This document shows, in pieces, positions 13,578 through 61,500 of a DNA stretch of 64,000 bases. The stretch spans positions 62,001 to 126,000 of the forward strand of contig JALDTO010000247.1 of the NCBI GenBank assembly GCA_023515725.1, read 5' to 3'. The stretch comes from Amoeboaphelidium protococcarum X5 (taxonomy: Eukaryota > Fungi > Aphelidiomycota). Below the pieces are notes generated by a model. That model had not been told where the DNA came from. It ran no database searches and saw only the letters and a program-made list of their open reading frames with translations. Both the position numbers and the translations under genes were made by a program. How positions within the stretch are numbered: the stretch's first letter is position 1; every line of letters starts with the position of its first letter.

Positions 13578-14564
13578 ACTTCTTGTTGCATCAGTGATAA
13601 ATTTTATATCTTCGTTTTGGACTTGTTTGAATTTTATGGCTGTAGCAAATTTATCATTTTTACGCCTTTCACTTCAAAATTGATAAAAATTGCTCAAGAT
13701 CAAAGAGTGAACGCGGAATTTTAGGTATGCTCAAGCTTAGCCGTGTATCAAGATGCCGTAGATATTTCTCTGATATGCCAGATCTTAGTCATCCTAAATG
13801 GAGCAGGAGAGAGAAGCTGAGTGAAATGAATTTTGCTAATAAAGGCAAAGGTGGATTTCGCGTGATGAAGTCGTTATAAATGAACACGAAAGATGCTCCT
13901 CGTCCTCAATAACAAGAGAGGCTCCCCAGCAAGAAGACAAGGCTGAATTTCTCTGATGATAAACTTCCTTCGCAGTATTAGAGTCTTTATTAAAATATAT
14001 CTGCACATCAATCTTCGCTATAACTCACTCAGCAAAATATCAAAGATGGATCTGCGCGTATGGATGTTTCTTACATACAACAAGAGGAATAGAGCAGTGA
14101 TGCGTCGTTACTACGTACAGATTCTGATATTCTATTATTATCAGCTGATTTATATACATAGACCATGGCTGACAGTATGATCGCCACTCAAGTGAAGGAT
14201 ATATCGTCATAATCAGTATTGATTAATCTTAAGAATGCAGTTGAAAATGGGTAGAAAATCGACGTGTCGGATGTTAATCATCTTATGGATGTGTACGCTA
14301 ATGAAAATGATTTGTAAATGGTGACTAAACTATATGGTCAATTAATGACTGGGTAGGATATAAAGCTTTAGAATGGCATTTCCTTGGGTGTATTACAGGC
14401 TGATATCAAATCTTATGGAATCGTGATAAAATGTCTGGCTAACAATGGAATGGCACATGACGCGTTCAAGATTTATGATTTATTGAAGACTCGCATAAAG
14501 ACTGACCATTCATTGACTGGATATATACCACGGTAGATTTATTCATCCCTTATAAAAGCTTGTA

Positions 14565-17321
14565 TCTGACTCTTTTAAAACAAATAAAACGCTTGTTTTC
14601 TTTTGCACCGGTAGTGTTTTGCACCTTGCACCCGGAGAAACGCACCGAACTCGCTTTGTTACAATCTCGACCGTCTCGCATGTCTGGCAGGAAGCGTTCT
14701 AGAGCAGTGTAGAGTGACTCGTAGCCATCTGGAGGTGGTATCACCACCTCCAACAGTAGTACTGGCATCCCAGCCGTTGATGAGTGTGCTGGTGTTGGCA
14801 GTAGTGTCGGCGTATCCGCCTCCTCAAGTTCTGGTCTGGCTGGGTGCGAGGCTGAAACAAGTGTTGTTAGCATGAATCAAACTGCTGATATCACTTCACA
14901 AAGTTCTGCTCAAGTCAGTGCTGCTTTCAATAGGTAGCTGGAGAATGAAGATGAAGATGACGACGACGATTACGACTCTGATGATGGTCTGGATGATGAG
15001 CAGTTGGCGAAGAAGGTGAAGAGACGCAAGAAGTCGGAGAACAGCCATGTGTATCGCATTGAAGCGGCGTACAAGTATAAGCTGGATGAAGGCATTGGAG
15101 AGACGTTGAAGCTGCTGAGGTTGACTCGATCCGACGTATCTGTGCCACTCACTGGCGGTAGGCCTTTGGCTGTGAATAGTATGTAAGCCTACTAGAAGCA
15201 TTACAGAGGATTGCGGTACTTTTTTGCGCTAATTGGTGACTACAGCTCGAGTTTAATGCTGCTTCCTAACCCCCCGCAGTACACACCGTCAATGAACGCC
15301 AAGAGCATCATTTTGTTTATCAAGTTCAAGCGTAATGAGAAGGGTTCTTTGCTAAAAGACGAGAATGGCAACGCTGTGAAATGTGTCTATGGGCACGATA
15401 TCAAGTGCTAGGGTGGTTGGAATATGCCACAGAATGTTGACCAGTTGTTATCGGCTGTCTCTGTGCTGCATGATAGTCGTAATTAGAGGGGGGAGTACAG
15501 AGATATCTGCGAAGAGTGCATCCAACGTTCTGAGCGTGGTGATAGATCTGGCTGTCGGTTCCATCCGATGGCTCCTCGTATTTGGCTGGGTGGAGATCCA
15601 AAGAATTCTTCCCTCATGACTAACATGTAGAGATTGAACTCCCGCGATGGATGCAGCTACGTGTCCGAAGGCAGCTAGCCGCTCACACCTTGGGAATTAC
15701 TACGTCTCCGCGAGTATTTCATCTCGAAAAATGATGCGAAGTCATTCATGATGTGGACGATGATTATCGTTAGTATCAAGCTATTTCTGCGCAATGATGA
15801 AGTCACCGATTTGAAAATTCATGATCCTAGGCTGGAAAATTGTCTCAACAAGGATCTTGCGACCTTTCAAAGTGATGGCAGTATATCTTCCCTTGCTTTC
15901 TACATTAAAGGCAAGTCTGATCGTGTTAGAGTGTGCTTGACTCTTTGGACGGATTATGATGTGCCCGAATTGTGCCCGGTTCGTGCGCTTTTGACGTGGA
16001 TTTTTATTTCTGGGATTAGAACTGGATTCTTGTTCCCTCAAGAGAGTACACTGGATGCTGTGAAGCAAGTTGGGCATGCGGCGTACAACATCTCTTACGT
16101 ATCTTATCATAGGCAGTATCAGAAAGCTTGTAAGATTGCTACCGGCAATCCCGATGGTAAATTTGGTACGCACACTAGTAGGAAGACTGGCTATTTGCTT
16201 GCTGTTTGGGGAATGGGATCAGAGATTGACATCACTAAGAGTGCGCGACACGCTTCGTCCGCTAATGCCGCATTGTATAAGAAGGATGCTAGCTATTTGC
16301 TAGAATTAGCGAAGACTAGACGTTTGGACGTGTCTTCCGTGGTAAGCAAATTCAGATCAGCCTACTGTGAGTAGCTATAGATGGCTCGCAGTCTGAATGC
16401 TGCCCATTCTAGAGGCAATTTTTGTCTGCAGCAGGTGAGTCAAGAGATTGTTCGTAGCTTATGTGGATTATCTGATGTTGATGCAGTTGGTGGACCTAGA
16501 GTGATTTACGATGCACTTCTCCAGTTGCAGAAGAAAGAGACTGTGCTGCAGCTTATTGAGGCAAAGTTGAAAGAAATTGCACCTAATGCCACTCCGGAGG
16601 AGATTAATGAGCTGCGTAGGATGCTTGAGCTTTATGCGAATGGATTGATTGCTGCCACTCAATCAGCTAAGTTGAAGTAGCCAAAATCTACTCTGACTTC
16701 TCAATAATCTTCTTCCAGATAGTTACGTGAACAAGCTGCGGTTCACTCTGATGATGAACTCTATGAATCCGATGAAGAAGACACTGACGTAGCTGATGTT
16801 GTACCTGCCATCACAGCTGTTCAGTAGGATGAAGTTGTGAATGATATGCCTGGGAGAGAGAAAGTGAGAAAAGCGAAGACTGCCATGGCGAAGTTGGAGG
16901 CCATTCTTGCAGTGGATGATCCTGGCTCAACCGTCGGGTTATCAGCTGGCGCCAAATCATTCTACGTGAAGCAATACTGCCCGATCATGAAATGTCTGAG
17001 AAAGCACTTTGGCGGTGATTTGGATAAGTTCATCGCACATTGGGGGAACTTCAAACCAACTAGCTTCAAGACAAACAATTGCTCTGGTACCATGGATGAG
17101 TGTAGTATTTGAACAAGACAGATAATATGGAGACTGAGATTGAAAGTGGATTTAATACAAAAAGTTTAATGCAAAATCATTGAGGATTTGTTTGAAACAA
17201 CTGACTTGTCTGTTTTCTGCGAGATCACCGTCGCGCGCTCGATCGCTCGCGCATTCTTCCAACGTCAACCTTAACGGTTTCCGTTTTTGCACTTTGCACT
17301 TTTAACAATAAGAGCATTGTA
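14565..17321 (+). mobile_element. Crypton-like tyrosine-recombinase DNA transposon, 2,757 bp
   Basis: TTGTA direct repeat at 14560-14564 and 17317-17321. Single YR ORF; no RT and no long TIRs. Boundaries are defined by the split host gene. Confidence 0.88.
14680..17112 (+). CDS. Tyrosine recombinase (810 aa) of the Crypton-like element
   Basis: Uninterrupted with TAR=Gln. Catalytic set: R (LFLRNDE, 15790), K (IKGKSD), HxxR (GTHTSRKTG, 16171), H (SARH) and Y (AALYKKD, 16276). Confidence 0.9.
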
Positions 17322-24486: not shown

Positions 24487-24814
24487 TGTTGTCTCCTTTC
24501 ATCAATATCATTGCCTTAACTTTCAATTAAGTAATTATCTGTTTTTTGCTAGATCAATTTTGATTAACTTGCGCAACCTAAATATCATCAGCAGATCACC
24601 TTGCAATACATACTGAACTGTAGTAAAACTACCTTCAATCGATCGTCGTTGTGAAAAGAATCTGAAACAGTCGCGCCTTAAAACGGGAAATTTTGTTGTT
24701 CATCGGCCACTCTTCTCTCTTTATCGCGGCAACTCTCATAATATTACAAATTTAATTAACTTTTGTATATACTCTTTACGAATCTTCATCTATTTTGTGT
24801 AATTGAGGGGTATA

Positions 24815-27800
24815 ATGACTGCTGATACTACTTAGAGCAAGAAAAAGACTGAATTGCTAGAGGCTAAACAGGATCTGGAGAAGCAAAAGGTGAAGGACAC
24901 TGTGGACAGATACAATTTCCTCCTGGGTTAGACGTCTCTATTTTCTCATTTTATAAAGAGCAAGGGATTAATGCCGTCGGACAATGCTGGTAAGAAAGCT
25001 GAATCTGGAGGCGATTCCAGAGGTAAAGGTAAGAAGGACGCCAATGCTAGACGTGGTAGAAAGACGGAGAAGGAGGAAGATGAGGAGTTGCTATAGGACG
25101 AGATTGCGGAAGAAGATAGCAGTAAACCCAATGGCGCCGTGGCTGCTGAGACTGTATTCACTAGTTCACCAGCATACATCAAGAATGGTTAGATGAGAGA
25201 TTACCAAGTGCAAGGTTTGAATTGGATGATCTCACTGTTTGAGCATGGTATCAATGGCATTCTGGCAGATGAAATGGGCCTCGGCAAGACTTGTCAGACA
25301 ATATCTTTTCTAGGATATTTGAAGCATTTCCGCAATACTCCTGGCCCTAATCTAGTCCTAGTTCCCAAGTCCACTCTGCAGAACTGGGTCAATGAATTTA
25401 ACAGGTGGATTCCTGATTTTAAAGTTTTTCTATTCCACGGTAGTAAAGAGGAGAGACAGTAGATGATCAATAATGAGCTCTTCGGTAATGGGTGGGAAGT
25501 GATGGTCACTTCGTATGAGACTTGTCTTTCTGAAAAGGCTTAGCTGAGGAAGTTTGCCTGGCAGTACATTGTGATCGATGAAGCGCATCGTATCAAGAAT
25601 GAGAATAGTCTCCTGTCTCAAATTGTCCGCACGTTCACTTGTCGTAATAGATTGCTGATCACAGGAACTCCTTTGTAGAATAATCTGCGTGAGTTGTGGG
25701 CTCTGCTCAACTTTCTTCTACCTGACATCTTCACCACGTATGAGGAGTTCGATGAGTACCTGTAGAGTAGTGACAAAAATGATGATTAGGATGATGTTGT
25801 CAAGTAACTGCATGCCGTGCTGCGTCCTTTCCTTCTACGTAGACTGAAGGCCGATGTCGAGAAGAGTCTGCTGCCTAAAAAGAAGATTAATTTGTATGTG
25901 GGCATGTCTGAGATGTAGAAGCAGTGGTATCAGAAGATTTTGAGTAAAGACGTTGAAGGTGTAAACGGTGCAGTCAAGGATTCTCGTGAGGGAAAGACGC
26001 GTCTGTTGAACATTGTAATGTAGTTGAGAAAGTGCTGCAATCATCCATATCTATTTGATGGTGCTGAACCTGGTCCGCCGTTTACCACTGATTAGCATTT
26101 GATTGATAATGCCGGTAAACTTGCTCTCCTTGATAAGCTGCTCGTTGCAATGAAAGCGAAGGGATCAAGAGTGTTGATATTCTCGTAGATGAGTCGTATG
26201 TTGGATATTTTAGAGGACTATTGCATCTGGAAAGAGTATGACTACTGCCGCCTTGATGGACAAACTGCTCACGAAGATAGAATTAGAGACATTGATGAGT
26301 TCAACAAGCCCAATAGTAAGAAGTTCATATTTCTGCTTACAACCAGAGCTGGCGGTCTTGGCATCAATTTGGCTACTGCGGACACTGTGGTTATGTATGA
26401 CTCTGACTGGAATCCTCAAGTTGATCTGTAGGCTGAGGATAGAGCTCATCGTATTGGTCAAAAGAAATAGGTGTATATATTCCGTTTTGTTACGGAGAAT
26501 GCAATTGAAGAGAAAGTCATCGAGAGAGCTGCCAGTAAGCTGAGATTAGACTAGCTTGTCATTTAGCAAGGTAGAGTGGCGAATTAGAACAAAACACTCT
26601 CCAAGAATGAGCTGGTGTCTATGATTCAGCATGGCGCTGACAAGATTTTGAATTCCAGCGGCAGTTCTATCCAGTTGGATGAGAGTATTGATGACATTAT
26701 CAAGAAGGGCGAAGAGAGAACTGCGCAGTTGGATAAGAAGTTTCTGTAGTTAGGCCTTGATGATCTGTAAAACTTTTCCCTTGAGGCTGGTAGCATGTAT
26801 GAGTTTGAAGGAAAAGACTTTAGTAATACTAATCAGCAAAAGAGTAAAGACACATCAGCTGTTGGGTTTGGATGGATAGCACCTGCGAGACGTGAACGTA
26901 AGACTGCTGGGTATTCCATTGATGAATATTATAGGCAGTAGATGCATGCAAATTCTAAGGGAGCTGAGGCCAAAGTACCTCGACCGCCAAAGTAGATCTT
27001 TATTCAAGATCACCAGTTCTATCCTCAACGTTTGGTTGAATTACAAAAGCGCGAGTTGTATGCATACTGGAAGGAGGTCAACTATAAAGTTCCTGTGAGT
27101 GATCCTCCGACAGAAGAAGAGCTGGAAGAGCAACGCAAAGTTGATGAGTCCGTCCCATTGACTGAGCAGGAAAAAGAAGAAATGGACCATTTGCGTTCTC
27201 ATGGCTTTAGCAACTGGCTGAAGAGAGATTTTTGGGCCTTTGTACGTGGTTGTGAAAAGTTTGGTCGCAATAATTTTGAGGGAATTGCCAGTGAAGTTGA
27301 GACTAAATCTGTTGATGAAGTTAGAGAGTATGCAGCCTAGTTTTGGGAAAAGTATTATGATATTTCAGATTATGAGACTATTATGGATAGAATTAATCGC
27401 GGTGAAGAGAAGATTCGCAAACGCGATCAGATCCAAGAGACTCTTTCCAACATTGTCGCCTAATACAAGTTTCCGTTGTAGTAGTTGTATATAAACTATG
27501 GTTAGACTACCAAGGCACGCTCTTTTAGTGAGGAAGAGGATCGCTTTCTGATTGTTGGGTTATAAAAGTATGGATACAATACAGATGACGTGTATGAACT
27601 GATCCGTCGTGATATTCGCGCCCACCCTGCGTTCCGCTTTGATTGGTTTATTAAGAGCAGAACTAGTACTGAGCTCTCTCGTCGCTGCAATACTCTTATC
27701 AATCTGCTGATGAAAGATATGAATCAGAACTATGGGAATAACGTTGAAGATGAGAACTCCGAGGCTGTTAGTGGGAAGAGAAAGAGCACCAACGCCGCTT

Positions 27801-27889
27801 CGTTGAATGGTAGTCAAAATAGTATTACCGCTCTGAATGGAGATTCCAATTCCCAGCAGCAGAAGAAGGTGAAGAAGGTGAAGACTTGA
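24815..27889 (+). CDS. ISWI-family chromatin remodelling ATPase (Isw1/Isw2/SMARCA5)
   Basis: [24 protein letters not shown] and [18 protein letters not shown] motifs, with C-terminal HAND-SANT-SLIDE ([11 protein letters not shown]). Confidence 0.97.
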
Positions 27890-28459: not shown

Positions 28460-28560
28460 TTTTCCATTTCACTATCCTTACAGTCTATTTCATCGGTTTG
28501 TCCGACAAACATTACTGTATATATCAGGCGCGCCTTTCGGCGCGGCAATTCCATTAAGGT
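28460..28560 (-). ncRNA. Predicted Fanzor omegaRNA (scaffold plus flank-derived guide); boundaries approximate
   Basis: CGCGCC-GAAA-GGCGCG hairpin overlapping the ORF end, GUUUGU/ACAAAC hairpin, and a closing UACAGU/ACUGUA stem ending at the element terminus. Confidence 0.65.
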
Positions 28561-30839
28561 CTGCTACCATGCATCGCGTAATGGCGGACTATTTGAGCCA
28601 TACTCCTGTAAGCATTAACGTCCCGATCTACAAAGACGTCACATCCAGTGTTTTGGCAGTTTGGGCAAACTCCAAATCTTGATTGGACTCTTCGGTTAAA
28701 ACGATCAGGACATTCGTACGATAGGGTTTCTGGACCATCAGCTTTGATGCAGACAGTTTAAGCCCGGCGACGACCAGGCAGTATCTTCTTTGCCTTCTTG
28801 TGTCGGCACCTCATCACCACTTCATGCTCCCATTGAAGATCTGCATGACATAATGAGTGCTGCTTGCTAGTGTGGAACTCCGGCGTTATAACTACCAATG
28901 CCCGACGACTGAATTCAAACGCGAATTTTCTCACCGGAACAGGAGAATTACCACGCACGTGCTTCACACCAGCATCACCAAGTGCAATTACCGGAGGCTT
29001 ATCTGGAGGTGAAAACTTGCCAATAGATTTACGCAGTTCGCGTTTCCTCTTCTTTGCAGCTTTACCTCGGCGCCGATCGTTGATTTTAGGCACTGGTGGC
29101 TTTGGCCTGCCATACATCATGTCGATGACTTTACCAAACGCAGACTTGGTCGCGCAAAATCGTCGGAATCTCCAATTACGATGGAATGATCTTGAGTAGA
29201 AGGCATAGACGTCCTCAAAATATCTGATGTAAACATCGAGATACTACTGGCAAGTGTTTGATTAGGCCATATCTTACTCCATCAGCGTGATTTCAGTTGG
29301 TTTAATATGCAACAGATGGGCTTCAGACTCTGTAGTCAATGCAAGACGTTACCAGTATCCAGCAGATATGTGGCCCGTTTCTTTTAGCTCCTTCTTGGCT
29401 TCTTTTAGCGTAATTGCACCATCGACGTCCGCTTCGTCGCCCCACACCAGTACGTTCTTCTTACCAGGGTCAACGCCAATCAATCGAGAGCCATCTAATC
29501 TTTGTTGGAGATTCCGACAGTTTTCCAAAGCAAAAGCCCCAACAATTACTTGAGACACGTCAATGCTTCGTGCTTTTCTCTGCAGGTCTGAAGCTTCATT
29601 TGCATACGCTTTCCCACCTTAATCTGAAACAGACACGGAGCACGCAAAACCATCAGAGGTGATACTGACACTGACGTTTTTAGATTGAGCCATCCGCTGT
29701 TAAAGACCCAAAACTTTAAGCCTTAGGATACATTACCGTTGATCCTCCTCCTCTTTCGACTCCTCCCCCAACTGATTGCCCAGGCGATACTGTTCAAATC
29801 CCCACTGAGCCAAAACTTTATTGTCAAAGCAGATGTGGCGCGGAACATCGGTACCAGTAGGGAAAATCTTGAATGATGGCAAGCCTAGCTCCTTGAGAGT
29901 TTAACGCAAATACATCAGATATTGGACCAAAACTTTCTAGCCCTCCTAATTCTGAAATGCATGGTGTGCTCTTGATGGCAGGTATGTTTGATGGGTATCA
30001 CGCTACTTCATCTTACCCGATTTCTATCGCTTGAAACCGATGAGTCCATGAAGCTGACTAGGAGATTATGCTTTTCTTTTACTGTATCTCCTTCTTGGAG
30101 CTCTGTCTTTAAAAGAAGTGGTGACAATATCCAATAAATGGTGACGATGCATTGAGACCAAGTGCCGAACTTCTTCAACTTATAACAATTGCAGCAACTC
30201 GTCCTTAATAGCAGCATCTTATTGCGCAATTGTCTCCTCATCTTCACCAGCTTCGTAATCAGGAGGCAAATGTATCTGAGTCGCGGGATTAATCTCCAAG
30301 TACTCGCCCCCAAAGTGTTCGATCGTGTTAACAGCTTCTTCAGTCAGCAAAGAGTTGAGCAGCTATAGAAACACGGTAAGCCTTCGGCCTTTTACATTAA
30401 AGGCCTCCATTTAAGCTTTAATCACCTTCTTCTAGTAGACCCATATAGTTTCAGTCAGATGCCAGGTGATAGCTTAAATAATCTTACGCGCTTGAAACAC
30501 GTACAGGTTAGGATTTGGACCAATCAGGCTTTCGTGCCTCAATCTCTATCGCACTTCAGGAGCGATTGTTTCAGCCAGTATTCGTGTGTGTTCATTGTCA
30601 CGATGAAACGCAGAGTTGCAAAGATACTCCAGCATTGACGCGAAATACTGCTAATGAGATAGCTCAGGTAGTGCCTTGCCGGCTTCATTCCATACATTAA
30701 GACTGAGATAGATCAGACGGGATGCAAAGGTGAGGTGCACTGAGCTCAGTCGAATCTGTGGTATCAATCTCTCTTTATCACCATCGCTAAGATTCAAGAC
30801 AGTATTTAGTTTGCATTTACGTGTTACTTTCTTTGCCAT
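28524..30839 (-). CDS. Fanzor1 (eukaryotic TnpB-like RNA-guided RuvC endonuclease), 771 aa
   Basis: One uninterrupted frame with TAR=Gln. FKIFP...PRHICFD and SITSDGFACSV WED-type motifs; RuvC-I IGVDPG, IALGDA, RuvC-II TPEFHTSK, Zn-binding H/C and CPNC, RuvC-III DRDVNA. Confidence 0.92.
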
Positions 30840-30902
30840 ATCTTCTTATCTATGAGAAGTTAGATAAGAAAGAGGAAGAAGAAATAGTGAACTGTCTGGC
30901 GC

Positions 30903-30909
30903 TTTTATA
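30903..30909 (-). promoter_or_regulatory. Candidate TATA box (TATAAAA) about 65 bp upstream of the Fanzor ATG
   Basis: CTATAAAAGC on the minus strand inside the element 5' region. Confidence 0.4.
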
Positions 30910-31442
30910 GGCCTTTTCAACAAGTCAGTAATTGGAGTTTGCTAGCCGCTGTAAGAGCCGCTTTTAGTAACGATGAAATTGAATTTCATTACTTGGCACT
31001 GTTTGAAAATTTCTAAAGTCAAAAACTACATAATATATAGGAAAAGTATTCTAATTACTATAATCCATCACTTGATTACTTAAATCTAATATCGATGGCT
31101 TTGAAATTGGCACTTTCCATCACTGGAGAATGAAATGGAGAACTTTGCGGCATTATCTAAACAGACGTCACATAAGTTACTTATAATTGTTCAAATTACA
31201 CGCATGCTTCGCATTACGAGTTCTAATACTATCTGTTGTAGGGAAGTATCGTGCTTAAAACTTCGTCATTATTTTTTGTGCCCAAAACACTTTTCCGTGA
31301 TCGGACATTTTACTGAAACGAACTGTAATTAAGTCGGACAGCTGTTGTTTGAGATGATCTGTCGCGTGTCATCGCATCGCTAATTTTAGTTTGTCTTTGA
31401 GTTCAACGGCTTAATTGTTGAAGAAAAGATCAAGCGGTATCG

Positions 31443-33163: not shown

Positions 33164-33329
33164 TCCACTGATTTCTTCCAATTAACTTGCCAACAGAGTA
33201 TCGTCTTGGTTTCATCTTATCACTGCATTACTTTGTCTTGTGTCTCTGTATTTGTTGCTACCTATGTTCTTTGGGTTTATATTCTGATGGCTTGAGTCAG
33301 TTTTGTGAAAACAGGTGAAAACCAGTAAT

Positions 33330-33403
33330 CACTCCTTGGCGCAATTGGTAGTCGCGTCGGATTCCAAATCCGAAGGTTAAGAGTTCAAGTCTCTTAGGGG
33401 TCA
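33330..33403 (+). tRNA. tRNA-Trp(CCA), with a C1:C72 mismatch
   Basis: Cloverleaf: anticodon stem TCGGA/TCCGA with CCA at 33364-33366, T arm AAGAG-TTCAAGT-CTCTT, and a T6 terminator at 33412-33417. Confidence 0.85.
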
Positions 33404-33650
33404 TTGCCTCATTTTTTAGTTTCAATTATAGTAATTTTTATGGTCAACATGGATTTTACTGGGTATTTCCTACTGTATTTAGCTTTCAATGTCGATACAA
33501 AGTCGCCCTAATTCATTCAAACCGTACTTTTGCCACTTATTGTGTTTCCGATTGCTCCCCCAAATAGCAATACATAGTCAGAGTGGTCGCAAAAGACAAA
33601 GTAAAACAAGGGTGCCCCACAACTAGCGAGATACAATCTATATGAACAAT

Positions 33651-54813: not shown

Positions 54814-57800
54814 TCATTCTTGAGTTACAAGAGTGAACGAGTACTCTTGATCACAGCCTACCCAGCTATCAGACAGGAGGAGAAGCTGGTACTTGTGCTC
54901 ACCGCCTTCACTTGGAACTTGAAATTGAAGTTTAGCAATGAAGTCATAGACAAATAGCACGCGCTTAATGGAAACCAATTCATTCGGGTTGCCTTCATTG
55001 TGTTTACCAACAATAAGCCACCATCCTTCCTGACGCTCCTTATCAGGATAGTTGATAGTGAGCACTGGCGGCAAAGACTCTTCCTTTTTAGGATGGTCAC
55101 CATCATCTTTCTACTGCATAGCAATTTCTCCTTCTTAGTCATTATCTTCAGAACTATTACCATCTTAATCACGACTGAGATGTACATCAATAGTCACAAT
55201 AGATCCAGCGTCAACAGTCACTTGCAAATTGTCCTAATGCTGAGTTCCATTTACAGCAAACTACATTTCAATCTATGGATATCTGTTGGCAGTCTCTGCT
55301 ATCATCTAAACTTGATCTTCAGAAAGGCCTTCAAAAAGTTGCTCTCTAATAGAGTCATCCACTTCAGCTAGATCATAAATGGATTCTATACCAAAATCTG
55401 ATGCCTTCTATAATCTATTCGCGTCGAAGAATGGCAGCTATTTCAACGGACCATCTCTATCAGACCACATTGACTGAATCAGCATTTAGCACAGTTCAAT
55501 TGAAGTTATCACAGAGTCAAGCATCTTTGCAGTGGACAGCACATCAACCAAAGCATACACTAGATTAACCGATAGTGGGAGAATCTTCTGGTCAAGGACC
55601 GCTTTCAACTTGGCAGATATCTTCACTCTACTGAAATAGGCTTAGAGTAGAGTGAAAATAACAGTCTTGGGATCACTAAAGTTAATTCTACCACGATCAT
55701 CAGCAGCCAACTTAAACACGCAATGCTCATACAAAGACTTTATCTACGATTTATCCAGCTTTGAGTTGTTCTGTAGAGTGGAGAACTCGGCAGACATTGC
55801 CAGCATTTCCAACAAGACTTTCAACTTCATCTGAGGACTTGCAGACTGAGAGAACATGTCGATAGTCAAGTATTCAATTCCGTGATAAGAGGCAATTAGG
55901 CCAAGACTTTGTGGTATTACCTCCTCTCCATCTTGAGCCAAATCAATACATTGCACTTCTTGCAGATCTCCTATTACAGTTTCAACAGCCTCTGACAGGA
56001 ACTCTGAAATGTGTCCAGCATCATTCTTGATCAGGTTATAATAGTTTGGATTCTTATACAATCTGCGCATCCAGAAGGACAATGACAAGAACTCCACAGC
56101 CTCTTGCTAATTTTCAACAGACTTGTTACATATCTCAGCATTTAGGAAATTGTGCAAACCTTGGACCAGCGTACTCTCAACAGGTAATACTTCTTTTACT
56201 ACATCACGTAAACTATCAACTGAAGGAGCAAAATTAAAGACGGATTCTTCTTGACATCCCAGCCAAGTACCTAAATCTTTAGCATTAGCAATAGGATGCC
56301 CAGTAGCCACAATACTAATCGCTGACTCTAACTAAAGCTGAATGTATTTCATCCGCATAATGCACTATTCTAAGCAATAGCCATCAGAACTATCCTTGAT
56401 TAAATGTATATCGGATACCACACATAGACTGATATTTTATAGGAATTCTATAGACTTCCATCGCCGAGATAAAACTTCAAATGAACTTGTACATGCCAAT
56501 AGAATATCTGCTTCATTCAGCTTCTCAACGTTGACATCTGTAAATTATTTTTACCAATACATTTATACATTGAAGAGCTGAGCCAATTTTTGCAGCCTCT
56601 AGAAAGACTCTTTAGCACTCTGCTCATTCAGAGATATGACAACAATTTTGCCGTTTGCTGATTAAGAGCTATCACTGGCCATATCAAGACTCTTTAAGTA
56701 CAATATTAGAGATAAATCCTGGATGATACTTGCATTGGATGACACTGAAGAAGTGACCAATAAACTTTAATGCAGACCATTTTCCATAATATGATTTAAC
56801 ACCACAGATGTGGCGGCATCAAATGAGTCAACAGTGTATTAATCATGAAAATACTATCGTAATTCCTAAGTGAGTACAGAGTCCACAGAAACGCAAGGAT
56901 AATCCTATGGAACTTCAATAAATCTATCAGCAGGCGGAGGTAGAATGAGATTCTTGAATGATAGAGCGATACGGCTCTCTGACTTTATCCAAGCATCAGA
57001 CACGACACTGACAAAGTAATTAGGATGTAGAGGCATCAGGACAGGAACGAAAAACGATACAGATTGCTGATCTTCCATATAGTCTGGATACAATACAAAC
57101 TGCTCATAGTGTAATACACTAGAACCGTCACCATCGACAACGAGTATCCAAAAAGTTTCACCGCCAGGATTATGACTTTATTCATCGAATGTGAAACTGG
57201 CACCAAGTTAAAGCTCAATCTTCAACTTTTACATAGTTATCGGCTGTATAGAAGCTTGCACATCCAAGCGCGGAATCTGCTGTATAGCATCCTTCAATAC
57301 TCTACCCGCCTTGGGATTCCTGACCAGCTCCCCAAGTTCTTGAGGATTAAGTAGCACCAACTTCGACCATGGAAACTCTTTACGCTCCAAACGGCGCAAA
57401 ATGTCTGTATCTACAGATCCTGGTAATTAACGCAGCGGAGTCATCACGGACCACATCCTCCGATGAACCATCTTACATAGCTCCAGAGACTGAGAAGTTG
57501 CATATGCCCACTTCTTATGCAGGCAAATTTCAAACAAAGCTCTCATTAGACGGCCAGCACTCTGCGTAATATAAATCATATCTGACATTAAAGAAAATAA
57601 CTCCAACTTGAGTTGACTGATGTAGCATTGCAATAGAACATTGACTTTTGCAAGAGGATCTTCAGCTGGCTCCGCAACAGGAATAGGAACTTGTTCGATC
57701 AGCCTTGACATCTCCACACGCTCCTCCAATCGAACGGTGATGAACTTGAACTCTTCGCTCATTGCGAAAATTCTAAACAACTCCAACATACCACATCTGG

Positions 57801-60729
57801 CATCCATATGCTTAATGTAAGTAACCATAGACTCATGAGCAATGTAGTAATAAGATGCAATTCTACCAAGTTCATTCGATGTAATATCACCACTTTATAC
57901 ATCATAATGCAGTAGATGTGACTAGCTGAGAATCATCAACGCCGTATGAACTAATTAGACTCTTTTCTAATCGAGCTGCGGATCTTCTTAAATCTCCTTC
58001 TCAGATATAAAGTAAGTAGACGGTGACTTACGCATTCTAGTGAATAGATACGTGTACTCTAACCAATCAATAGCCTCATCACGATTCTTCACAGTCCCGG
58101 CTACAATCTCGGCATTCAAGATATCCGGCAACTTGGCAATAAGCTAACTCTCAATTGGTAATTGTGTATTGAGCAGTGACAAGTAAAACTACAACTCATC
58201 CTGAGTAGTTATAATTATACCCTCACCAAACGTGTCATACTGTGGACGACCAGCTCTTCCTAACATTTATAGAACATCCTGAGGTGATAACTCTATCCAG
58301 TCTCCTTTCTCAGGCGAATATACTTGCGTACCTTTAATGATCACCGTATGTGCAGGCAGATTGACACCCCATGCCAGTGTAGCTGTGCTGACAAGAACTT
58401 GCACATGCCTGTCGGCAAACAAATCTTCAACCAGAGACCTGTCTGACCGGCTCATTCCGGCATGGTGAATAGCAAAACCATATGGCAACAAATCTGCCAA
58501 GTCTTTATTTTTACAGTTTCCGGCTTCATTTCTCAATATTTCTCTACTCTGAGACTGAGAGTGAATAAATGCTCCACTCTGATTCTTCTCCACTGCCTAA
58601 TCTCTCAAAAACTTGGCAGTCTTGGCCGTGTCTGAGCGTGAATGAACAAAGACAATCATCTAGTTCTTACCAGCTTCGGCGATGACCTTGTCATAGACAA
58701 TCTAGTTCATAATGCGATGCCTCTTCAATGGTCGCTTCTCCGTAATTCCAATGTAATTCTATTGAAGAGGACATGGACGATAAGAATTGTCAAAATGGAA
58801 CAGGCCAACATCATTATTCACATGCAGAAATTGAGCAACATCTTCATAATTTGGTAAAGTAGCGGAAAGGCCAACAAGGCGAACTTAACTTCCAGTAAGT
58901 TCCTGCTGCCTCAATGTCCTGGCCACAATGGACTCCAACACAGGACCGCGGGTGTCATGCAACAGATGTATTTCGTCAATTATCAATAATCGCACCAGAT
59001 TGACATAAGAACCGTCATGAACTTTACGCGTAATGACATCCCACTTCTCAGGGGTTGTCACCAAGATCTAAGTCTCTGCAATCTGGAGCCCAGATAGCTG
59101 CTTGTCACCGGTCAGTTCTGCCACAGATATACCATAAGGCTCGCTTAATCTGCTCCTGAGATTACCAACAACTTCTGCAACTAGCGCTTTCATAGGAGCC
59201 ACGTAGACAATTTTGAACTGATCAGTCTTAAATGATCCATCTTCAGCATTGCGATATCTATCCAGAACATTCAAAATGGTCAATACCGCGACATTAGTCT
59301 TACCAGCACCGGTGGGAGCACATAGAAGAATATTCTCATCTCCAGATCCAAATGCCACCGGATAGAGGCGACTCTATACACGATTAAGAGTTTTCGTGTT
59401 CTTGAAAGCCGCCCTAGTCCACTCTGGCAAACTTGAAATGGATACCAATTGCTCATCTTCAGAGAAAGGGGCAGCTTTCATTGCAGGTATAACAATCTCT
59501 TCATAATCAGCTTTGGTCTTTTTGTATGATCCCTCAGGTAGCATAACTTTTTCATTCGTCATTGTATGCGCACCTTATCTGAACGCCATACCGTGAATAT
59601 CCAACATCTTAAGTGTGGACGTGCCTGCATTATCATTCTCTAATAACATGTCATCGAGATCCGTATATTACACATTAAGCCTTTTCAGAATCCAAGATAG
59701 ACCTTAACGAACCATGTACTCGATCATACCATCTCTCTCAGCGATATCAGCTTCAGACAACTTGATGGCATAGTAGATCAAATCTTTATTGGAAGATAGT
59801 ATTTAAACCAAGTCATGGCACCGATCACCAAGTAGACCATGAAGACCATCGTCACATTCATGCTAGCTGAGTTACAGCGACTGTAAAATCTTCCGAGACA
59901 ATCTCTAGCTTTCCACAGCGGAGAATCTGCCCATCAACAAAGATTACAACCAGCCCGAGTTAATAGATTACCCATCAAGATCCATATCACCCAAGTTTGC
60001 ACTATCAACATCCTTCTACTGATCCTCATCTCTCAGCCCGGCTTCTATAATGCCCTGGATAGCCAAATCATCATCATCGTCATCATTGTCCAATTCTTAA
60101 ACCTCATTCGTGAACTGCTACTATGATGACTATAAATCGGCCGCATCATCTTCAACCACAAGGTCTATAGCAGCTCCCTCAGAGAACTTTTAATAGTTAT
60201 CGCCAGCTAAAGCAGATTGATCAGCAGATACTAACTATTGCAAAAGATCCAAAATTTATGGCAAATCTTCGCTGGACTCAGGACCAATAATTTCTAACAA
60301 ATTCTCTTATAAATTGTCTACAGCACCATCAGCATCACGCACTATCTAGATGCATTCATTGACAATACTCTGACTTAGAAAAGCATATTCAGACGCGTAC
60401 TTTGACACGATACTCAGTAGCTTATCGTACGCTGCATGGCTATCTTCAGTAAGAGGCTAATACGCATACTCATCAGCCAGTTTTAAAGCATCCAAGACTG
60501 AATCAATCTTTTAACCATTCTTGGTACTAACACGCGCACTTTATTACAGAACCGCCTTCTATTAGGAATTCTTCTTCTATCCATCCATCTCATTAGTGGC
60601 AGTAGCACCGCTTCCCAAAGCTCTATCACCCATCATCTACTTCAGATCAACTCTACCGTAAAGAGACACGGCTTCTCCACTCAGCTCTTATTCATCAACA
60701 GTCTTTTTATTCCCTCTCGGTCTACTCAT
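54814..60729 (-). CDS. BRR2: U5 snRNP 200-kDa helicase (1,971 aa, intronless)
   Basis: [14 protein letters not shown] and [21 protein letters not shown] motifs, two Sec63 units, C-terminal [11 protein letters not shown]. Confidence 0.97.
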
Positions 60730-61500
60730 TATTATTTTTCAGTATTTAAATATTTAATTAAGATTAGCCGTTGACCTAGAGTAATAGAAATTGCGCGTCG
60801 TGGACTTTAATCTGGAAAGAAGAAGTTTGAAAGAAACAGACTCGTCAGAGGTTGGCGATCATGAAACGGTTCGCACTCAATGTGATGTTGATAATCATGC
60901 CTTCCCAAGTAACTAACTAGACTGTAGTCAAAGGACATGATTGCAAACTCGGTCCAGTTTGCATTGCTCACTGCTCTTGGTTAGCAATAAAATAATGAAA
61001 ACTGGTCGTGTCATGCAAAGGATGGTGAGAAAATATTCGAGGTGACCCCGCAAAATCAGAATGAAGCTGTGAATAATTTTGAGGAATTGGTTAAATTGGT
61101 TAAAAGCATGAAAAAGGACCCGTCATGATAATCCGTCCTATCCAGTCTAATTGGTATTTGTATTTGACGTTTCATCTGTTTCCTTAGCAGTTTCGCTTAC
61201 GAGTCAAAAGGCTAACTAAAAAGGTAGTTCGACCACTCAATCAAGCGAAGAAACTTCCATCTCTGTCTCGTTCTCGTTCTCGCTCTCGGTCTCCCTCTTC
61301 TTCTCCCGCTCGCTCGTTTGTCTCGTCTTCTCTTCTCTTTTCGTCTCCTTAATGCTGTTCTCGTATGATAGCGTTGGTTTCTCTTTCCTTAAATTTATAG
61401 GTTTTATCTATAAAATATATTCCCTCTTCTCAGTATTGTGGCAGACGTTAGTATAGATAGAGTTGTCAACATTTTTGACTCTATTCCAGACAGACTATAT

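Follow-up and report, generated by a model that had tools for sequence, protein, structure and literature searches.

A divergent Fanzor1 nuclease as the only cargo of a recently multiplied, probably Tc1/IS630-type non-autonomous transposon in the aphelid Amoeboaphelidium protococcarum

On the minus strand of the window (the whole stretch of 64,000 nucleotides that was analysed), which comes from Amoeboaphelidium protococcarum, an aphelid and algal parasite related to fungi, lies a frame of 771 codons for which the original prediction had proposed an intact Fanzor1 RNA-guided nuclease within a compact transposon. The locus raises the questions of whether the frame is a functional gene for a Fanzor1, where the element that carries it begins and ends, which enzyme moves it and what a nuclease would do for such an element. 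The features of the coding region are the following.

28524..30839, minus strand: Fanzor1 ORF, 771 aa, with TAA/TAG read as Gln (table 6 translation, identical database protein P0039, profile, fold)
29469..29471, minus strand: RuvC-I Asp457 (VDPG), invariant in 13 homologues and aligned with the DP motif of SpuFz1
28878..28880, minus strand: RuvC-II Glu654, the rearranged Fanzor site, six residues before the zinc finger (homologue alignment, profile)
28620..28622, minus strand: RuvC-III Asp740 (RDVN) (homologue alignment, profile)
28656..28859, minus strand: TNB zinc finger H661/C664/C725/C728 with a 60-aa insert (homologue alignment)

The frame extends from an ATG to a TGA (30839-28524) and contains 23 in-frame TAR codons (14 TAA and 9 TAG) and no internal TGA, in agreement with the more than 20 such codons predicted; at the TGA frequency of the window, the chance of a TGA-free frame of this length is near 1e-8. 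The same TAR=Gln code is used by a neighbouring ISWI-type ATPase gene (24617-27886) and by a neighbouring frame of 1,974 codons (54817-60738), which from its N-terminus we take to encode a Brr2-like helicase. The window also contains an 868-codon frame in table 6 at 14506-17109. For A. protococcarum, the assignment of UAR to Gln has been published (PMC5304391). Comparison of the window ORF with its counterpart in L012, a copy representing an 86%-identical subfamily, revealed 11 TAR/CAR swaps at the same codon and a dN/dS of 0.16 at a dS of 0.45, which show directly that the ORF is adapted to the TAR=Gln code of its host and is under purifying selection. It had also been claimed that this code hides the gene. 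Under the standard code, no stop-free stretch of the ORF indeed exceeds 161 aa, but GenBank translated this genome with the correct code and already contains the full-length sequence and its siblings as hypothetical proteins, since protein P0039, whose cluster is named 'hypothetical protein MIR68_...' of Amoeboaphelidium protococcarum, is identical to the 771-aa translation. The protein is therefore not hidden from protein searches and is unannotated because of its divergence.

This divergence was evident in all direct searches. Stop-free pieces of the ORF gave no significant match among Pfam and PDB sequences, and the whole protein, used as a single sequence, gave none in Pfam, NCBIfam or PDB; for full-length searches the identical database protein P0039 was employed. 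With a stop-free piece, 30 relatives were found, several of which have the Pfam domain Cas12f1-like_TNB. A profile of 13 of these relatives matched SpuFz1 with an E value of 1.1e-6, aligning the WED, RuvC-I and bridge regions, and matched GtFz1 and TnpB weakly, after SpuFz1. The link to Fanzor came only from this profile and from the fold. A predicted structure model of the 771-aa protein (pLDDT 75.5) retrieved only Fanzor1 structures with Foldseek at E <1e-3, and the seven top matches were all Fanzor1 (E 3e-15 to 3e-10; SpuFz1 3e-15, PpFz1 9e-13, GtFz1 3e-10). Z scores over about 480-545 residues were 19.4 for SpuFz1, 18.8 for PpFz1 and 14.8 for GtFz1, compared with 7.7 for Fanzor2 and 8.4 for TnpB using the same model. 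As far as a predicted model can show it, the protein thus has the Fanzor1 fold, with a large REC, WED, RuvC and TNB, and is nearer to Fanzor1 than to Fanzor2 or TnpB, so that both the proposed identity and the Fanzor1-type WED motifs are borne out.

The C-terminal signature of Fanzor1, D-X(125,275)-[TS][TS]-XX-zinc finger-X(5,50)-RD (PMC3627910), is present as D457, T657-S658, H661/C664/C725/C728 and R739-D740. The three RuvC acidic residues lie where they had been predicted, and E654, followed by six residues and then H661, represents the rearranged Fanzor arrangement. The predicted zinc finger exists but is not a canonical C4, as its first ligand is His (H661-x2-C664 ... C725-x2-C728); in a sister family this position is Cys. 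Within the 60-aa insert, C678/H680/C697/C710 are conserved among the six closest proteins (five for H680) and missing from shorter relatives, and may form a candidate second metal site of the closest clade only. In a quick tree built only from the hits found here, the aphelid proteins formed one supported group. A further relative was found in Amoeboradix gromovi (P0013). Look-alikes in the ESM Atlas belong to DUF8286/TNB clusters, mostly from giant viruses, and are a lead only.

The protein could also act by RNA-guided DNA binding without efficient cutting, or in another helper role such as protection or recruitment at donor sites. The inserts that are large relative to SpuFz1, the His in the zinc finger and an identity of 14-15% to any tested Fanzor would fit such a role. 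Nuclease-dead derivatives of TnpB, however, typically lose catalytic residues, and the D/E/D triad is kept here in every intact copy and in nearly all homologues. We regard a binding-only function as quite unlikely and proceed with a Fanzor1 that would cut DNA.

The element that carries this ORF has the following features.

28481..31325, minus strand: Fanzor1-carrying element, non-autonomous Tc1/IS630-type DNA transposon, 2,845 bp (homology of 11 other copies stops there; read depth)
31301..31325, minus strand: left (5') TIR, starting CAGT, with 21/25 positions shared with the TIR of the Tc1/IS630-type DDE element of contig C98
28481..28505, plus strand: right (3') TIR, also part of the predicted omegaRNA scaffold, 16/25 against the left TIR and 20/25 against the C98 Tc1 TIR
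28479..28480, minus strand: 3' TA target-site duplication, pairing inside the terminal RNA stem (empty-site coordinates; folding, covariation)

A TA is found on both sides of the element and both ends start with CAGT. The imperfect 25-bp TIRs are real but prove little on their own, because left and right TIRs match at only 16 of 25 positions and the pair is not among the 25 longest inverted repeats. The ends are instead fixed exactly by a genome-wide comparison of copies: homology to 11 other copies, each in different flanks, stops precisely at 28481 and 31325, the ends that had been proposed. The twelve copies share these end coordinates and 96-100% identity, eight having an intact ORF. Ten copies in the genome are full-length and 98-100% identical; in addition, one copy carries an internal duplication and another an insert of 512 bp, and the 86% copy L012 and several remnants exist. 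Intact frames with all catalytic motifs are present in eight young copies and in the 86% copy. No second long ORF was found within the element, consistent with the claim that it encodes no transposase. Short derivatives, a search for which had been suggested, were not recovered, as no ORF-less ghost copies with these exact ends occurred among the TIR-pattern matches.

The regions flanking the insertions have a second version in the assembly that is 75-90% identical and probably represents a second subgenome, in line with a putative hybrid origin of this organism. In this second version the window site is empty and collinear after removal of one TA. By coordinates, the upstream and downstream TA of the window copy map to one base of the empty site (C205:276406), and the same holds for copy L002 (C179:494437). 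These two empty sites demonstrate a 2-bp TA duplication as predicted; the junctions of two further sites were strongly divergent. The element has multiplied recently at TA sites with duplication of these 2 bp. The window copy and L002, which lie 59.5 kb apart, are identical across 2,845 bp, and this identity of two copies on the same contig might suggest an assembly artefact. Their flanks differ, as do those of every copy, empty sites exist, read depth in a DNA run is about 1000-1500 within the element and 65-70 in adjoining sequence (14-21-fold), and the element is also present in a second A. protococcarum assembly. A decayed standard-code pseudogene is in turn contradicted by the host genes that use the same code and by the TAR/CAR exchange. 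We consider both readings refuted, with a negligible residual probability.

Several observations were made at or near individual copies. A 285-codon frame across the rebuilt junction had suggested that the element splits a host gene, but it corresponds to 79 codons in the homeologue and the idea was rejected. A tRNA-Trp(CCA) gene (window 33329-33404) lies 2 kb from the left end of the element; none of the 11 other copies tested (0/11) has a tRNA within 1.5 kb. A perfect 10-bp inverted repeat just 5' of the ATG (window 30843-30870) is imperfect in the 86% subfamily and therefore probably inessential. At G000:C244:171713-266827, two inverted copies (L005, L003) have exchanged their upstream flanks when compared with the homeologous contig C136. 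This amounts to an apparent inversion of some 89 kb lying between them, which may stem from ectopic recombination or from misjoining at the repeat. The 512-bp insert that interrupts one copy (L013:3054-3566, G000:C213) is unrelated and has neither TA ends nor TIRs. Near-identical pieces of the element were detected at low depth in three other studies (runs X5, X6, X7), one of which, a hot-spring metagenome, also contained a piece of flank; this might indicate low-level presence of the organism or cross-contamination.

A. protococcarum has at least two more Fanzor1 families, with 42% and 38% identity, and both are also present in this genome. The 42% sister resides in an autonomous element of 4.55 kb that encodes a pogo-type DDE_1 transposase and has TA flanks and ends starting with CTGTA. 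In the second assembly this pogo-type element (L087, L090, L091: 264-4819) encodes a 759-aa Fanzor1 (P0044), and near-identical Fanzor copies occur in this genome at C207:293405-295681 and C249:16-2292. A third family encodes an 802-aa protein, P0045 (L088, L092: 1665-4940), and is represented in this genome at C98:1401584 and C142:302933; its right end is TA-flanked and a matching left TIR is not obvious.

Which enzyme moves the window element was examined through its ends. A degenerate TIR pattern, which gave 37 matches compared with 4 for a reversed-pattern control, detected not only the Fanzor copies but also ends flanking DDE_3 (Tc1/IS630) coding regions. Such DDE_3 elements lie at C155:71808-72993 and C162:108574-109816, two are on C264 and one is on C98, the transposases on C155, C162 and C264 being judged by coordinates. 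The C155 element (1,182 bp) has perfect TIRs and only TAR codons within its DDE match. The TIR of the C98 element agrees with the left Fanzor TIR at 21/25 positions and with the right one at 20/25, better than these two match each other, but its transposase is single-copy and broken in two. The two halves (L056:1080-1525, L057:1503-2290) are split at a TA, swapped and 6.4 kb apart, and a family-2 Fanzor 3' remnant with its RNA scaffold (L056:633-795) lies about 300 bp past the N-terminal half. The species harbors an autonomous element combining DDE_1 and Fanzor, and an intact Tc1 gene with identical TIRs was not confirmed among the TIR-pattern matches, so another TA-targeting enzyme, for instance the pogo-type transposase of the sister element, might be the mover. 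Pogo-type ends starting with CTGTA have little in common with the TIRs of this element, whereas those of DDE_3 elements agree at 20-21/25 positions, and we judge a mover of another class to be unlikely. The similarity of ends supports the predicted partner class, a host transposase of the Tc1/IS630 type that would act in trans.

The right end of the element is also predicted to specify an RNA.

28479..28564, minus strand: predicted omegaRNA scaffold (folding z about -3.5 to -4.2; covariation)
28545-28564, minus strand: weak 5' stem of the scaffold (folding)
28529-28544, minus strand: GAAA-capped scaffold hairpin over the last codons (folding)
28510-28519 with 28479-28484, minus strand: terminal stem of the scaffold, including the TA duplication (folding, covariation)
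28489-28509, minus strand: inner hairpin of the scaffold, enclosed by the terminal stem (folding)
28464..28478, minus strand: predicted guide, some 15 nt of flanking host DNA (different at each copy; length taken from SpuFz1, PMC10432273)

The stop codon lies only 43 bp from the end of the element. The final 80-97 nt fold with z scores of -3.5 to -4.2, and in a coarser scan with 80-nt windows the end ranked second within the element. Across 9 related sequences from three related Fanzor families, 98 of 99 cells were paired and 4 pairs showed two-sided changes. No shuffle reached either of these values and slid controls were 19-53% paired; the shuffle test is inflated by relatedness, and only three independent lineages are represented. 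The scaffold region had no match in Rfam. TIR and TSD are known to belong to Fanzor1 RNA scaffolds (PMC10711439). Folding and covariation thus point to a predicted omegaRNA scaffold at the 3' end of the element, which would include the TIR and the 3' TSD and be followed by a variable guide. An ENA metagenome scaffold (L089) contains a standard-code relative of 939 aa whose CAGT right end, flanked by TA, has this terminal stem as well.

At the opposite end, the sequence adjoining the insertion is strongly biased.

31326..31329, minus strand: ATTA adjoining the left end, consisting of the 5' TA duplication and AT, the predicted TAM (insertion-site counts)

Upstream of the left end, ATTA was found at 15 of 17 independent sites and TTA at all 17; in the window, the background per TA is 0.10 for the ATTA context and 0.30 for the TTA context. 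One of the two GTTA sites is ATTA at the orthologous insertion in the second assembly (L012 vs L093). The motif is one-sided, as no mirror preference for TAAT exists downstream of the right TA. SPu-1 shows a one-sided CA before its TA, and the measured TAM of SpuFz1 is CATA (PMC10432273). Because of this parallel, ATTA is predicted to be the TAM of the Fanzor1 studied here.

TA-specific transposases show flanking preferences of their own, and ATTA could instead be the site preference of the transposase, the Fanzor being a neutral passenger now that has stayed intact through a young burst. The young copies have a dN/dS of 0.45-0.66 on few changes, and frameshifts are present in 2 of 10 full-length copies. 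On the other hand, the dN/dS of 0.16 between subfamilies, the covarying RNA stems and the one-sidedness of the motif argue against neutrality, and ATTA also precedes both independent sites (n=2) of the pogo-borne sister family. A neutral passenger is, in our view, very unlikely, and ATTA is retained here as the predicted TAM.

In each Fanzor family the terminal RNA stem varies in step with the end sequence. This pattern and the two sister-family sites are no more than suggestive of an exchange of carriers within the aphelid Fanzor1 lineage, with ATTA possibly set by the nuclease. In its full form, this idea states that one lineage switched among unrelated TA-targeting carriers (Tc1, pogo and a third end type) within a single species, rewriting the 5' arm of the terminal stem to fit each new transposon end and keeping ATTA upstream, which we hold to be possible but doubtful. 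If true, the ATTA bias would derive from the TAM of the nuclease and not from the transposase, and either only those insertions that homing can restore or copy would persist or the nuclease would steer insertion; this would constitute genomic evidence of Fanzor-driven homing in a eukaryotic DDE transposon.

The explanation that we favor with good confidence is a cut-and-paste, non-autonomous IS630/Tc1/mariner transposon with a Fanzor1 endonuclease as its sole cargo and a mechanism as follows. A Tc1-type DDE transposase of the host, whose own TIRs are similar, would excise and insert the element in trans, at TA. An RNA of about 85-105 nt would cover the final codons of the ORF, continue through the right TIR and the TA duplication and extend about 15 nt into the flank. 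The Fanzor-omegaRNA complex would recognise 5'-ATTA followed by a guide match, that is, a precisely emptied or never-filled site, and would cut it, and repair from an element-bearing sister or homologue would restore or copy the element. Such restorative homing would keep the passenger ORF intact, and the element may be an active OMEGA system. The homeologous empty-site junctions are locally divergent and were considered as possible scars of cleavage, but the one readable gap lies at guide positions 9-12, which is not the expected cut. The one readable homeologous empty site has GTAA where ATTA would be required and agrees with the guide at only 8 bases, and so would escape cutting. Excision by Tc1/mariner transposases usually leaves a footprint, which would shift the target and counts against the homing mechanism. 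The homing model has been reviewed, restorative homing having been demonstrated for bacterial TnpB only and not for Fanzor1, and the benefit of Fanzor to DDE elements has been called unclear (PMC13565253).

Among known systems, SPu-1/SpuFz1 from Spizellomyces punctatus (PDB 8GKH, 9CEU-9CEZ; PMC3627910, PMC10432273), the best profile and fold match, resembles the present element in its single ORF, lack of a transposase, TIRs, TA duplication, one-sided two-base motif upstream of TA and many recent copies. In contrast to SPu-1, the protein described here has 771 aa instead of about 635 aa, with 14-15% identity, a His in the zinc finger, the 60-aa cysteine-rich insert and the TAR=Gln code, the motif is ATTA and not CATA, the TIRs are much less alike (16/25), and no ORF-less 'ghost' family with these ends was found among the pattern matches. 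With 43 bp from stop codon to end, the predicted RNA would overlap the ORF, and the RNA of GtFz1 also overlaps its ORF end, by 17 codons (PMC10432273). GtFz1 (9CER) and PpFz1 (9CF0) share the Fanzor1 fold and differ in having 10-15% identity to this protein and, in GtFz1, Asn instead of Asp at the third catalytic position. The Mariner-associated Fanzor1 elements, PUl-4 among them (PMC3627910), likewise have Fanzor1 as only cargo, TIRs of the Tc1/mariner family, TA duplications and autonomous relatives alongside; here the TIRs are similar (20-21/25) but not identical to those of the candidate partner, and the host is an aphelid. Fanzor2 (ApmFz2, 9B0L) and TnpB (8H1J) share the core of WED, RuvC and zinc finger, and Fanzor2 the rearranged Glu, but are far weaker matches (Z 7.7 and 8.4), are both much smaller and belong to an IS607/IS605 context, whereas this element has no serine recombinase or HUH transposase.

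The layout of a lone Fanzor1 with Tc1/mariner TIRs and TA duplication has been known since 2013 from SPu-1 and PUl-4 (PMC3627910). A literature search found no paper with Fanzor and Amoeboaphelidium together in its main text, and no A. protococcarum entry is present in the supplements of PMC10711439 and PMC11423790 or of the bioRxiv version of PMC10530073. The available entries of a table in PMC10432273 include two A. occidentale proteins, and the family of the window may be listed there. The element is therefore not a new kind of system, and appears to be a well-preserved, apparently unstudied member of Fanzor1; the searchable papers contained no description of a Fanzor for this lineage and genetic code.

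What it adds is a divergent, compact and probably active Fanzor1 for which predictions of TAM (ATTA), scaffold and guide are ready. Within one small genome, at least three related Fanzor1 families occupy different transposon ends, and young copies, candidate transposases and homeologous sites that are empty occur alongside them. This setting makes the role of Fanzor1 in cut-and-paste elements testable, by setting the site preference of the transposase against the TAM of the nuclease.
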